A stretch of DNA of 64,000 nt from Magallana gigas (GCF_963853765.1 NC_088853.1:70866001-70930000); one strand, 5' to 3'; counted from the stretch's first letter, positions 42,977-59,842 are shown. The notes: generated from the sequence alone by a model not told the origin. A program made the numbers and translations.

Positions 42977-43011
<35 letters not shown>

Positions 43012-43375
43012 ATTCTGATCACATTTTGTCCGTCGTCCGTCTGTCCGTCTGTCCGTCTGTCCGTCTGTCCGTCCGTCCGTCTGTCCGTCTGTCCGTCTGT
43101 CCGTCTGTAAACTTTTTACATTTTGAACTTCTTCTCTAAAACCGCTTCGCCAACTTCAACCAAATTTGACACAAAGCATCCTTATGGAAAGGCCAATATA
43201 AATTGCAGAAATGAAAGAGCTATCTTATTTCAAAGCGGAGAAAACATCGAAAGTGTAGAAAAAGGGGGGTGTATTTTTAAAAATCTTCTTCTCAAGAACT
43301 ATGGAGTCAAATTCAACGAAATTTAGCCTTGATCATCCTTATGGGAAGGAAAAAATAAATTGCAAAAATTAAGCT
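42977..43375 (+). mobile_element. HINE/Helentron-type left end with microsatellite and about 1.7 satellite monomers (about 157 bp)
   Basis: T-run then hairpin AGCTCACCTGAGC-TGAAA-GCTCAAGTGAGCT (42981-43011). (GTCC/GTCT)n at 43028-43106. Monomer anchors CTTCTTCTC at 43128/43285 and CATCCTTATGG at 43177/43334. Confidence 0.85.
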
Positions 43376-43476
43376 ATAATTCGGTTCCAAATTTAAGTTA
43401 TAACGAAAAATAATAAAAGGGGTTAAATCGGTTTATAAATAAGTTTAGTTCGGGTTCGTTATTCCAGATTCATTCT

Positions 43477-43583
43477 TGACGTCATTCCGTCTCGGAAACG
43501 AGGTTGTTTGTTCGAAGCGGCCATTTTCGTCCCATTCTGTCAAACGATTGATTAGTTTGTTGTGGAACTGTTCACGCGCAAAG
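43477..43583 (+). promoter_or_regulatory. Candidate promoter and 5' non-coding exon for the RepHel ORF
   Basis: CpG-enriched patch with TGACGTCA (43477-43484), YY1-like GCCATTTT (43520-43527) and donor AAG|GTAATG at 43583. The RepHel ATG is directly preceded by a TTTGTAG acceptor. Confidence 0.35.
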
Positions 43584-44140
43584 GTAATGTTTGAAACTTG
43601 CAAGATATATTGGTGCCGATTATTATGTGAAGTAAACTGAGGTTAAATATTTCAATGTGTTGACATTTTCACTTATGTCGGTGGTTTTAGTTTGTTTCAT
43701 TTTCATTGCGGTTTTTAACTATGGGAAACTATCGCGTGTATTTTGGAATTTTTACGTATTAATCAAACATAAACTTCGGTAAATCAGGCAGCTGATTGTT
43801 TATCTGCGCAAAGTGAGCAAAATCTGATGCATCAACATGAAAAGACGATTCATGCAATTGGTAAATATGGATGATGTCTGCGCAGTGATTGATTTATGCA
43901 ATATGTTATGTGAATATGCTTACAAACTCGAGTCTATTCAGTCTAAGCAGACATTGTTTTCGCAGATGGATATATGTAGGTGTATGTATGATTTGAAAAA
44001 TAAATTGTGCCCTGTCTTTGTTATGGTGCATTTTTTCTGTTTTTATTGTTTACCATTTTATATTTACTAGCCATTGAATGTCAAGCTTTAAGTTATGAGC
44101 AAGATACAAACCATAGGCACCTGACGTTGTATATTTTTCT

Positions 44141-44348
44141 CAGAATAAAAATAAATACCTTAAATCATTAAATCTAATAATACACAAGGTACGCATCGCC
44201 ACCATCTTGGATTTATTTCAAACTGTCACATCAGCTGGAAGTTCTGCTTGAAACTCATTGGTAAAATTTTTATAATTGACCTAAATCCAAAATGGAGGCA
44301 ATGGGTACCTTGTGTATTATTAGATATACAGTATTTATTTTTATTCTG
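44141..44348. mobile_element. Palindromic MITE-like element
   Basis: Arms 44172-44215 / 44282-44325 match 40/44 inverted, plus outer CAGAATAAAAATAAATAC arms. Confidence 0.7.
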
Positions 44349-55904: not shown

Positions 55905-56569
55905 TATAATTGTGTTTTAAAGAGAATGGGGCGCCAAAGTAAAAACTCATCAGAGGGAGCTGTGAAAATATTGCCCCCTCCCTCATCCCATTTGTCACCA
56001 TTAAAAAGGTGACAAATGGTTTGTTAATATATAGATATTGTAAGACACCAACTATTTGCTTTTGGCACTGTCATAGATTCAGTGGTTCAAGGGGAAAGGG
56101 GATTTAATTATTAAAAATTTGATTTGTAACAATTCCACCACATGTTTCTTGGATGTAGAGAAGAGTGTTAAATCTGTTCTCAATTTTTAATTTCTAGCCT
56201 TTAATTGGCCAAATTTACAGATATCATCCACTTCACTGATGTTGTTTTCATCAATTCTCCCCCCCCCCCCCCCCCCCCCACCTAAAACATGACTATGCCA
56301 ATATTTTTAAATTTATACATTAAATATGTATTTAATTACTCATTATATGTACTAGTATTTTCTAATTTACTGGATTGATGTATATAAATATTTTCATTTA
56401 CTTATTACATTTTGTCTTGTATCTCTTGGCCATCATTCTTAATACTATATTGAATTATAATGTCTATATATACATATATCCAACCAAAAATGTTTAAGTC
56501 TTATATTCAAAACTACAGTGAACATGTGTAAATTTGTGTATATTTCTTCAATATTGAAAGAAAATAATT

Positions 56570-56810
56570 CGCAGACTTCAAGGTGCCAGGTAAATGAAAG
56601 TCATCGACTCCCCATGGATAAAACACCAGTCCATAGCAGCTTAACTCCCAGCTTACTGCTCGTACCCAATTTCAGCTTGGTTGACTAAGACAAAGACTGA
56701 TGTAGTACCTTGTGTAAGGGACAATACAACATCAAGTGACCACATGGGATTTTAACCAGCAACCTTTGGGTAACTGGTCTAACGCTCATGACCACTGAGC
56801 CATGTGCTCC
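56570..56810 (-). mobile_element. tRNA-derived SINE (degenerate)
   Basis: Minus-strand A-box TGGCTCAGTGG (56792-56802) and B-box GGTTAAAATCCC (56746-56757), followed by a SINE-core-like segment (TGTCCCTTACACAAGGTACT..AAATTGGGTAC). Confidence 0.65.
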
Positions 56811-58686
56811 ATAAATGAACTACATTTGAGTTACCGTAATTGTGAATTACAGTTGTGGACAGGTCATATAAACAATCAATACTGTGCACAAGCCACATCA
56901 AAAATTGAACTTTAAATTTTCTTCATTTTTAAGCAAAACAGAATGTGGCAATATCTGAAGAAGAGAAGAGAAGATATAGTGAATTAAAACTGATTTGTTT
57001 AATAAAAATTGTATACTGATGCTTTATTTATATATTTTTTGTTGTATTTCCATGTGTCACAATAACTTGATAGAAGTTAAATTGTACTCATATATATACA
57101 GTCTATATTAGTTTATATATGTCGCATCAAAACTGTTTGCATCTCATATAAATAATAACGGACCTTTTTTTCTAGAAGACTATTTTTCAAATTTGTCTTT
57201 AAATTTAATATTATTTAATTATTATCTTTATAGCTGTTATCAATGACTTCATTTAATAATATCGTTTTTTATCAAGCAAGGGTTGGTGTCTTACAATACA
57301 ATAATTGTATGTGAATCTGTATTCATTTTCATTTTTTTAAATTCTTTAATATTTATTTATATATATACTGACAGTTCACACACAATATGTACAAATCCTT
57401 CATGTGAGTGCATAGTAGATGTAAATTCAATCATGTTAATACATGTATGATGTAAGTTGAAAATATTGGAGCAAAAAGAGAAGACATCTTTTCAGTAATG
57501 TTCCTTCTTTTTTTTTTTTAAATCTTTATATTACCTCAAATCAAATCATTTTTATTTAAACTATATAACTAAAACCTGGTAATATAATTGTTAATAATGA
57601 AAATTATATATATCATTAATGCAATGTGATGAATTTATTTAAATGCATGTATTTCTCTTATGAATACAAAAGGCACCAGTATTTAAGGACACTTAGCGCC
57701 AATCGTTCAAAAATGACAGGTAAGTATAAAGAAAGGAGGTCAATGGCCAGCCTGTAGCGGGCGGTAAACCTGCCTTTTCTAATAAATTCATATCTATGGA
57801 CAGAGTTCATAGTTATAAACAATATGGCATACATGTATTAAGAAAAAACAAAAGAAATATTACATACTGGTTGCATGTTTGAGACATTGTACTCTTAATG
57901 TACACTTTATAGAACATTTCATTTAAATAAATTGAGAAATACATTGCATTGAAAGTGAATTTATTTTCAAACAAATATTCACTTAGGTTTTATTCAAATT
58001 TTAAAATTTCAAAATTATTCACACACTTTTTTGTAGAAAAAAAAGTATTATTTAATATGATTGTGCATGCGTTTATATGCAAATATAGTATCATTGAAAC
58101 ATTATTTTGTATCATATAACACAGAAAAGATGTCTTCATCTTGTATAGTTATATTAAACTTATCATAAATGTGTCATAAAGTTTATTGGGTTTTTTTTCT
58201 GATAATCATTTTAAAGTATAAATGCATTATTTTTTGCAATTTTTCAAACAATCACACTCAAATGACAAAAATAAAAAAAAAAATCTAGTATGTTCAAATC
58301 ATTCTTGATCAAATTCATTTTCTGTTTTATCGCAGTTAGCAAATGACACAAGAATAGTTATGATACGAGTTTTTGTATAAATTTCTATTGACAAATACTT
58401 TTCATTTAATTATGTTTTGTAAAATCAATACTGTTCATAACCTTTCTATTTTCGCATTTTCGTAGAAAGGTTATGAAAAAACAGTGGAACTTATAAATTA
58501 ATTTATTTAAACTTTGTGTATGTCTATGACTTATTAAATTATATATCCATGTATATATCTGGTTGCAAAATATGATTTATTGTATTTTATCATCATTATA
58601 TTTATTTAATTTAACGTACAATATGCATAACTATAAGACACTGAGAAACTACAAATTTACATTTACAGTATATTTGTAAAATTTGT

Positions 58687-58930
58687 TAAAACCATTTTAA
58701 CAACACCTTGGAATTTCAGTAGGACGTAGCTATCTATGCACCAAAACAAGTTTAAAGTGATGCAGTTTCAAGCAAAATATGCACCGATTGCTTAGTCTTA
58801 GCTTAAAAGTGAGAAGATCTTGTTGATTTCATCCATGGCTGAGTGGCTGACACTGATATAGACAGGCTTACGTCACATTGCTGTTTAACACAATTACCCA
58901 AAGTCCAAGCTCTTGTTAAAATGGTTCTTA
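58687..58930. mobile_element. MITE, copy 2 of the 18481-18733 family (more decayed left TIR)
   Basis: Colinear similarity with copy 1 over its full length. Confidence 0.8.
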
Positions 58931-59805
58931 AACTAATGTATTACCAGTAACTACTTTTTGAATGTGTATGCATAAAAATTATTCATGACGTTCTTTTCAT
59001 ATTACCAGTAATATTTGTCTTTAAATAAAATTGCTTTCTAAAATGAAATATGTCTCATGTTGATATATCATAATTGTATTCAATGTAGATATGTAAAATC
59101 ATGCCATTATGATTCAAACATATTTAAAATGGTTTCATATTTTTAAGGGTTCACATCAAATAAAATGTTGCCAATTTTTCAAGCCAATTTTGCCAAAAAG
59201 CATACGAAAGCTTCACTGCACATTTCAAATTCTGGGATATATCAAGTTGGCATATATTAAATAAAGCTAGATTTTAACAGACACAATTTAGATTACAAAT
59301 TGTCTAATATGATTTTGTGCATGCTTCTTGTTATAATCTTGGAAATAAAGAAAGGTTGCGTGAAATAACTCATATTTGGTAACCACTTTTTTAATATATA
59401 AAACTGGATATGTATTGCATGATCTCTGATATGAAAATCAATGAACTAGAATATTGGCGTCCTCTAATTGTGTAGATTCAACTTGTTCAAATTATGACTA
59501 CAGGTTATAAAATTGGCCAACAATTGGTGCTAAATTTGAAACTACTATACATTTTAGCAAATGCATGAATGTATCTTTAGAGAACCATAACTCTTCAAAT
59601 CTGTGCACAAAACTGCAGAAATTAACATACCATCAGTGATATATTTAATTTATATTGCGCAATTTATTTTCATTCCCACCCCTCAATAAAAATATTTAAT
59701 CTTGCATTAAGAAAACTATGGTACATAACTATGCTAATTTTAATATTAAATATCACTATTCTTAATTATTTAAAGTATTTTAAGTCAAAATAGTTAGCAA
59801 TTTTG

Positions 59806-59842
59806 GCTCAGATGACCGATGTGGCCCATGGGCCTCTTGTTT
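59806..59842 (+). mobile_element. HINE/Helentron-type right end
   Basis: GCTCAGATGACCG (10/13 to the inverse of the 42981-42993 left arm), perfect palindrome GGCCCATGGGCC (59823-59834), then TCTTGTTT. Confidence 0.8.

Follow-up and report, generated by a model that had tools for sequence, protein, structure and literature searches.

The element and its open reading frame

The 64,000-nucleotide stretch of DNA analyzed here (NC_088853.1:70866001-70930000; hereafter the window, with positions counted from its first nucleotide) is AT-rich (~35% GC), and its sequence points to an ostreid oyster as its source. On the plus strand, at positions 42976/7-59842, lies a 16.9-kb segment in which one long open reading frame (ORF) is enclosed by two structured ends. 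An earlier note on this DNA had proposed the segment as a candidate autonomous partner of satellite-carrying HINEs, the non-autonomous derivatives of Helentrons. We conclude that it is very probably one full-length autonomous copy of a Helentron, a DNA transposon of rolling-circle type within the Helitron group. The kind is already known from Helentrons and their HINE derivatives. The features of its ends and of its ORF are listed below.

42976-42981, plus strand: 5' terminus, a T-run (TTTTT, 42976-42980) and an A at 42981; upstream flanks diverge there
42982-42993, plus strand: 5' subterminal inverted repeat (subTIR) GCTCACCTGAGC, 12 nucleotides (nt), invariant in the window, Crassostrea virginica, Saccostrea cucullata and S. 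echinata
42999-43010, plus strand: internal inverted repeat GCTCAAGTGAGC, the second arm of the left hairpin, complementary to the 5' subTIR (DNA fold)
43027-43108, plus strand: (GTCY)n microsatellite, 10.4 copies of TGTCCGTC (Tandem Repeats Finder)
43109-43420, plus strand: two satellite-type monomers of ~157 bp, with boxes starting at 43128 and 43285 (direct repeat)
48198-55904, plus strand: single-exon ORF of 2568 amino acids (aa), no stops (ORF translation, Pfam)
48711-49169 (aa 172-324), plus strand: peptidase C76 / Herpes_teg_N (Pfam, above cut-off)
49489-50521, plus strand: Lys/Glu-rich coding tandem repeats within the ORF
aa 925-1051, plus strand: DUF6570 (Pfam, above cut-off)
aa 1167-1363, plus strand: Rep (Pfam Helitron_like_N), with a YxxxY motif at aa 1533-1540
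aa 1864-2309, plus strand: PIF1-type helicase (Pfam match at aa 1864-2072 and beyond)
aa 2359-2564, plus strand: apurinic/apyrimidinic (AP) endonuclease (Pfam Exo_endo_phos, aa 2379-2560)
59806-59817, plus strand: 3' subTIR GCTCAGATGACC, 10/12 complementary to the 5' subTIR
59823-59834, plus strand: 3' palindrome GGCCCATGGGCC, identical in four C. virginica copies and in the S. echinata locus L134
59835-59842, plus strand: 3' terminal TCTTGTTT; homology with all other copies ends here

This anatomy agrees with most of what the earlier note had described. The hairpin, microsatellite and satellite monomers of the left end were all present where it had placed them, as were the subterminal inverted repeat, palindrome and CTTGTTT of the right end; the 10/13 match that it gave for the right repeat equals 10/12 plus one flanking base. 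The complete Rep-helicase-endonuclease ORF that it had placed between the ends was recovered as 2568 aa with no stops and with its catalytic motifs intact. Its two cautions, an imperfect right inverted repeat and nested old insertions, were also real: the repeat matches at 10/12, and the element contains an insert bounded by inverted repeats and a foldback.

The Rep and helicase domains were both above the Pfam cut-off (Helitron_like_N, E = 1.6e-27; PIF1, E = 5e-25), and the Exo_endo_phos match scored 26.8 bits against a cut-off of 24.5. In relatives down to 55% identity, conservation extended to the Cys and His of the protease, the PHVHM and YIVSY motifs of Rep, the Walker A (GGAGVGKS) and Walker B (DEISMV) motifs of the helicase, and the N, E, D-N, D and D-H motifs of the endonuclease. 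The Rep motif reads RGSPHVHMVVW in the window; motif 2 of Rep in its Helentron form is the signature in the literature that separates Helentrons from Helitrons. The best matches of the protein were those of Saccostrea (82-84% identical) and C. virginica (80%); an exact look-up of the 2568-aa protein gave no record, and nothing closer over the full length is on record than these matches. The ORF was under purifying selection, with a ratio of nonsynonymous to synonymous divergence (Ka/Ks) of 0.135 against C. virginica (synonymous divergence, dS, 1.21) and 0.147 against S. echinata (dS 0.86), and the lowest values (0.07-0.09) in the Rep and helicase parts. These data indicate, at the level of sequence, that the ORF encodes a Rep-helicase-endonuclease of the Helentron type whose function has been maintained.

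The left hairpin, in which GCTCACCTGAGC and GCTCAAGTGAGC are separated by a TGAAA loop, reached -12.5 kcal/mol when folded as single-stranded DNA (z = -4.96; none of 200 shuffles did as well), and its 31-nt motif occurred once in the window compared to 0 occurrences expected by chance. The 12-nt repeat begins 6 nt from the start of the T-run, one T of which may be the host TT target. The microsatellite was found at the same position, with variable length, in all related loci. The two monomers of the window are spaced 157 bp apart and are 73% identical over 88 nt. Autonomous copies carried 2 monomers in the window and in C. virginica, 3 in S. cucullata and 4 in S. echinata, the last three of which are 166-bp units that are 90-94% alike. 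Between genera, identity of the monomer region was 68-75%, versus 59-61% for shuffled or unrelated controls.

At the right end, the 3' subTIR is followed by GATGT, the palindrome GGCCCATGGGCC and TCTTGTTT, in that order, and the window has a single occurrence of the 22-nt right-end motif (0 expected). The 3' subTIR ends 25 nt before the 3' terminus and the palindrome 8 nt before it. The counterpart of the repeat was CCTCAGGTGAGC in the C. virginica copies (11/12), ACTCAGGTGAGC in L134 of S. echinata (11/12) and GCTCAGGTGAGC in a short element, L025 (12/12). The palindrome was conserved in 5 other autonomous copies; among the 12 short elements listed, it was within 1 mismatch in all and exact in 6.

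Boundaries shared with other oyster elements

The loci compared were those encoding the closest proteins. Four copies in C. virginica (loci L001, L003, L004 and L005) lie on four chromosomes inside different host genes (mitochondrial-carrier, PLC-beta, CBS-domain and WD40). They were mutually homologous from L001:5218 to L001:20093-20099 and nowhere beyond, giving element lengths of 14.4-15.7 kb, and were 98-99.5% identical across the ORF and 3' region, which indicates recent amplification of the family. Window positions 42976-43340 aligned with L001:5218-5565 and positions 59807-59840 with L001:20060-20093, and the flanks outside these segments were unrelated. The left hairpin motif was present once per locus, lying upstream of the ORF by 4.2-6.2 kb and on its strand, in six loci and additionally in L133 and L134. 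The right motif lay 2.6-2.7 kb past the stop codon in 4 of 4 C. virginica loci and, in L134, ~2.8 kb downstream of the point where ORF-level matching to the window ends. This S. echinata locus, the ORF of which is decayed, has the left end, ORF, conserved 3' block and right end in window order; its left end matches window 42959-43298 at ~80% and its right end matches 59804-59841 at 92%. Sharp common boundaries were thus seen at unrelated loci of C. virginica (n = 4) and of a sister subfamily in S. echinata (n = 2), that is, in species other than that of the window.

The earlier note had proposed that the flanks of ORF copies be aligned to find where homology stops. In this alignment, homology stopped at the window-type ends in C. 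virginica (n = 4). Flanks common only within ~43400-57800, which the note had named in advance as evidence against its proposal, were not what was found, as copies of both C. virginica and S. echinata reached both ends.

At least 120 metagenome contigs were obtained by scanning with the 30-nt hairpin. Their GC content was 32-42% in the seven checked, and they are evidently bivalve DNA in environmental assemblies. No contig appeared to be human, and no runs of N were encountered. Among left-end copies with at least 40 nt further upstream, 111 of ~134 began to match the window at 42976±1; the upstream flanks were all different and diverged directly before the T-run (~70 copies listed). Thirteen elements of ~0.4-2.6 kb have no ORF and join a window-type left end, microsatellite and monomers to a window-type right end, with homology to the window ending at 59840-59843. 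The right palindrome was 383-886 bp past the hairpin in 12 of these and 2588 bp past it in L025. Eight short elements (~0.4-0.9 kb) aligned with the window only at the left end, at 43100-43340 and at 59800-59843 (the last 36-43 bp). The short elements share the microsatellite-to-monomer junction and the monomers themselves, which number from one to about four in each.

The 2.6-kb element L025 has an interior that matches the interior of no other species' element, and shares ~1 kb of 5' internal sequence with the window (43551-44108 and 45106-45442), which makes it a deletion derivative of a window-like element. Window segment 44109-45105 is unmatched in L025, and homology resumes at 45106. Together, these observations form the classical signature of an autonomous element with its non-autonomous derivatives, and the proposed partnership with satellite-carrying HINEs is supported by the existence of short ORF-less elements with both ends. 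Taken together, these data make the window element a good candidate for the enzyme-coding partner of satellite-bearing oyster HINEs.

Modules of a similar build were seen in more distant relatives. Pinctada imbricata locus L131 (4160-4420) and the ENA contig L132 (8300-8700) have other hairpins, GTCY/GTTT microsatellites and tandem monomers, situated 5.8 and 1.6 kb upstream of ORFs whose proteins are 55-58% identical in amino acids. The association is unproven in these two because such modules are common there and there is one copy of each; it hints that a hairpin-microsatellite-monomer module is general in bivalve autonomous Helentrons.

Some of the sequences recovered bear bacterial labels. 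Contigs L127-L129, from a metagenome-assembled genome labelled Sedimenticola sp., are binned as a bacterial symbiont and contain the bivalve Helentron left end, and the Helentron proteins P0022 and P0316, from a metagenome-assembled genome labelled Candidatus Thiodiazotropha taylori, are named "AAA family ATPase" or "hypothetical". The Helentron sequence in these symbiont bins (36-42% GC) is most likely contaminating host DNA. In addition, contig L130 (ENA ERZ926044) belongs to project PRJEB12083, which is cited in papers for UK wastewater and river effluent metagenomes; this contig suggests that oyster DNA can be detected in samples of the sewage type.

Internal non-coding DNA

The remaining features of the element are non-coding or nested.

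43421-48197, plus strand: 5' internal non-coding region, fast-evolving and partly nested repeats, without DNA match to other species
44109-45105, no strand assigned: probable nested insertion, ~1 kb, with inverted repeats at its borders (arms 44099-44131 and 45088-45120), with a foldback inside (44133-44356)
45769-46777, plus strand: 136-bp tandem array, 7.4 copies, ~80% alike (Tandem Repeats Finder, self-BLAST)
47287-47457, no strand assigned: nested repeat resembling a foldback or miniature inverted-repeat transposable element, with 84-nt arms; also in unrelated contigs L077 and L038
55905-59805, plus strand: 3' internal non-coding region, conserved between species only at 55918-56063 and 57716-57781
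56737-56809, minus strand: tRNA-like stretch (Rfam tRNA, 23.1 bits, E = 0.016, below the gathering score, full model length)
57716-57781, plus strand: conserved block made up of AGGTAAGTAT and, after it, a ~50-nt stem-loop; 81-86% identity in C. virginica, S. cucullata and S. echinata

Outside the ORF, sequences of different genera could be aligned in four stretches only: the left 330-360 bp, ~140 bp after the stop codon, the block at 57716-57781 and the last ~36 bp. At a dS near 1, this restriction suggests constraint. The neighbours of the conserved block could not be aligned between species. Its counterparts lie at L001:19012-19070, L002:17657-17720, L006:19038-19109 and L134:18616-18678, and the consensus fold has 17 pairs, 3 of which show changes on both sides. 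The block (57716-57781) had no Rfam match. AGGTAAGTAT is invariant and resembles a splice donor.

The place and persistence of the microsatellite and monomers allow a tentative suggestion about their role. The module occupies the same place in four oyster species at an ORF dS of ~0.9-1.2, and it can still be aligned where the remaining non-coding DNA cannot. It is conceivable, although we regard it as doubtful, that the module is an ancestral and selectively maintained cis-acting part of the transposon, for example a site at which the Rep-helicase is loaded or paused. If this were true, an active transposon would both keep reseeding and constrain the very old, widely conserved Cg170/BIV160-type satellites of bivalves, and this would account for their unusual longevity.

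The 136-bp array was missing from L025 and from the elements of other species, and the 3' non-coding part was ~1 kb longer in the window than in C. virginica. The tRNA-like stretch may be the head of a nested tRNA-derived short interspersed nuclear element; no further copies of it were present among the fetched loci, and neither Rfam at the gathering score nor ARAGORN gave a match over 42-61 kb. Within the ORF, the Lys/Glu-rich repeat consists of 8.2 copies of 126 bp in the window and 11.7 copies of 63 bp in C. virginica (L001:11336-12073), and its copy number varies between copies, resulting in C. virginica proteins of 2496 and 2559 aa.

Alternatives, proposed mechanism and known systems

Several observations weigh against the conclusion that the window holds an autonomous partner of oyster HINEs. 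The ends of the short elements, which come from bivalve DNA in metagenome assemblies, were 82-94% identical to those of the window, not >95%. Word searches with both ends of the protein (709 aa from the C-terminus and 420 aa from the N-terminus) found no other flanked copies from the window's species; the closest relatives found were short contigs inside the ORF with no flanks, namely L130 (94.9% nucleotide identity; a 5.6-kb contig with a broken ORF, matching window 50102-55606) and P0264 (93% amino acid identity; on a 1.1-kb contig). The right palindrome folded no better than shuffled sequence, and the weight given to it comes from its conservation and not from folding energy. The T-runs at both boundaries are no more than a hint of insertion at TT with no duplication of the target; no duplicated flank was seen among ~70 listed junctions. 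A Saccostrea subfamily (L002 of S. cucullata, L006 and L133 of S. echinata) has the same left end with a different right end. Finally, the window's own 3' repeat has two mismatches (10/12) and the element contains nested repeats, so that this copy may be immobile.

The last of these points is the core of the alternative that survives best, in which the Helentron is correctly delimited but can no longer move, and either supplies protein in trans or is silent. The 3' repeat of other copies is 11/12 to 12/12, and the window copy taken alone, at 10/12, would fail the family rule of "11 identical bp" (PMC4067079). The nested foldback, the insert bounded by inverted repeats, the tRNA-like stretch and the longer 3' non-coding part are also in keeping with an immobile copy. 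In contrast, the ORF runs without a stop over 7.7 kb and retains all catalytic motifs, which argues for recent insertion. Moreover, the short HINEs L020 and L099 carry the same G-to-A change in the 3' repeat, and published Cg_HINE copies are mostly mismatched in this repeat (PMC7492417). We consider an immobile copy possible but, on balance, unlikely. On the main reading, this copy could still be active and its protein may serve the HINEs of its own genome.

A second alternative concerns the origin of the element. A Rep-helicase unit could have inserted into, or recombined with, a HINE in the ancestor of Ostreidae, after which the composite would have moved by the HINE ends, with the monomers as captured passengers. 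In C. virginica, the 5' 4.7 kb was indel-rich and only 73-93% identical between copies, compared to 98-99.5% for the ORF and 3' region, as if 5' modules had been exchanged; turnover of the 5' module in this species seems much quicker than that of the remainder. The same flanks with different arrays, and vice versa, have been published (PMC7492417). The Saccostrea subfamily, which keeps the left end, also points this way. Its members L006 (3773-23184) and L133 (2464-22130) are 97-98% identical over 19.4 kb and run ~3.2 kb past the usual right-end position to a new palindrome, CTGTTCAAACAG. The window-type right motif was not found in L002 or L006, and what may be a decayed remnant of the old right end lies at L006 ~19990-20030. 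Within the family, then, right ends can be exchanged, and the new one looks like the result of end bypass with capture of flanking DNA, which would make this subfamily a natural example of Helentron end bypass and capture. Fast 5' turnover and a swapped right end fit a rolling-circle element with exchangeable modules. However, no relic inner termini were found in the window element, module order was conserved in all four species compared, and such a chimera is currently indistinguishable from a native arrangement. We regard this origin as improbable; it is, in any case, compatible with the present function proposed here. As a separate observation, some C. virginica copies, and only some, have an array of four 160-bp units in the 5' part.

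The earlier note had offered a choice between a master element and a younger Helentron inside an older HINE, and of these the master element is retained. The nested arrangement, in which a younger Rep-helicase Helentron has its own unrecognized ends and positions 42977 and 59842 are the ends of the older HINE, draws on the frequency of HINE-type left ends (at least 3 in 64 kb, so that chance adjacency is not negligible), on the imperfect right subterminal repeat and on L025, which has some of this 5' interior but no ORF; still, it is not credible and we give it hardly any probability, because the order of left end, ORF, conserved block and right end recurs at unrelated loci of C. virginica (n = 4) and S. 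echinata, copy-to-copy homology stops at these ends with no second end pair inside, and independent nesting at the same position in three genera would be needed. No second subterminal repeat or palindrome was found inside the window element.

Canonical Helitrons, such as Helraiser, which was reconstructed from bats, combine a two-tyrosine HUH Rep and a PIF1-like helicase in one fusion, use a 3' hairpin as a stop signal, and capture flanking DNA by end bypass; they have 5'-TC and CTRR-3' ends and an A^T target. The window element is similar in its HUH Rep with two tyrosines and its PIF1-like helicase, and bypass is apparently illustrated by the Saccostrea subfamily. It differs in having no 5'-TC/CTRR-3' ends and no A^T target, and in having subTIRs and an AP endonuclease domain; its targets appear to be T-rich. 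By analogy with Helitrons and HUH enzymes, the Rep domain (HUH and two tyrosines) would nick the left end as presented by the hairpin, and the PIF1-type helicase would displace one strand 5' to 3' up to the stop signal formed by the right subterminal repeat and palindrome. The strand would then be circularized and inserted at a T-rich (TT) site, and the C-terminal AP endonuclease could help insertion, perhaps by nicking the target. Any DNA bounded by the ~50-bp left end and the ~36-bp right end could be moved in trans by the same protein, and such mobilization would give rise to short HINEs and hence to the dispersal of monomer arrays.

Helentron and HINE pairs have been described in Metaseiulus occidentalis, Culex quinquefasciatus and Drosophila (DINE-1) by Thomas, Vadnagara and Pritham in 2014 (PMC4067079), with >95% identity within one genome as the criterion for partners. 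In those pairs, subTIRs are 11-15 bp, at a distance from their terminus of 2-4 nt for the 5' repeat and of a few tens of nt for the 3' repeat, and a short palindrome lies 8-35 bp from the 3' terminus (PMC4067079). The window element resembles these Helentrons in its Rep-helicase with a C-terminal AP endonuclease and in its subterminal inverted repeats. As in DINE-1, an inner inverted repeat forms a 5' hairpin, and a microsatellite, central tandem repeats, a 3' palindrome, a T-run at each boundary and non-autonomous derivatives with the same two ends are also common to the two systems. In contrast to the Helentrons of that study, a cysteine protease (Herpes_teg_N / peptidase C76, not OTU) is fused in the same ORF and there is no RPA-like ORF in the element. 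The autonomous element itself bears the microsatellite and 2-4 satellite-type monomers, unlike those pairs, and the ends of short elements are 82-94% identical here versus >95% there.

The closest published elements in oysters are the Cg_HINEs of Crassostrea gigas (Vojvoda Zeljko et al. 2020, PMC7492417, in which the bivalve "pearl" elements CvA, CvE and CvG are also cited). They share with the window element a left flank composed of a subTIR, a complementary inverted repeat and a GTCY-type microsatellite followed by 150-180-bp monomers, a right flank of ~60 bp with a subTIR and palindrome, and apparently T-rich insertion sites. The Cg_HINEs are non-coding, whereas the window element has a coding part. 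By eye only, the 166-bp monomers of S. echinata share the strings GGGGCCACAATG and AAATCTTTAAAAAT with CL1/Cg170 arrays in the supplement of PMC7492417; short window strings were not found among the arrays of Table S1 that were compared. None of ten autonomous C. gigas Helentrons in Repbase could be related to Cg_HINEs, and the relationship was called "unresolved" (PMC7492417). No partner for oyster HINEs was reported in the 2021-2025 literature searched, which did not cover Repbase, and a family consensus may already be deposited there. A literature search for the subTIR string gave irrelevant matches only.

Oyster genomes are rich in short satellite-like arrays carried on non-coding HINEs, and a delimited autonomous element with HINE-type ends is a concrete candidate for the open question of their partner (PMC7492417). 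It makes testable which bases of the ends are required, what role the monomers have in transposition, and how arrays grow and spread.

Elsewhere in the window, six other ORFs gave no match in a Pfam search. Two further HINE-type sequences were recognized. Positions 4800-5780 hold a complete HINE of another family, with a hairpin (ATACCCCCCGC ... GGGGGGGTAT), a GTCY microsatellite at 4863-4885, an array of 4.9 copies of 146 bp at 4889-5598 and a right repeat, GCGGGGGGTAT, near 5760. A third HINE-type left end begins at 63620 and runs off the window at 64000, with a hairpin (AGGTCACC ... AGGTGACCT) followed by Cg170-like monomers; these match 169-bp arrays adjoining two of the C. virginica Helentrons (L001:21843-23309 and L005:22877-27366). 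Finally, a G-rich minisatellite at 20210-21823 consists of 37.6 copies of 43 bp (95% match) and is strongly strand-asymmetric, with a GC skew of +0.51 and a GC content of 47.5% compared to ~34% around it.

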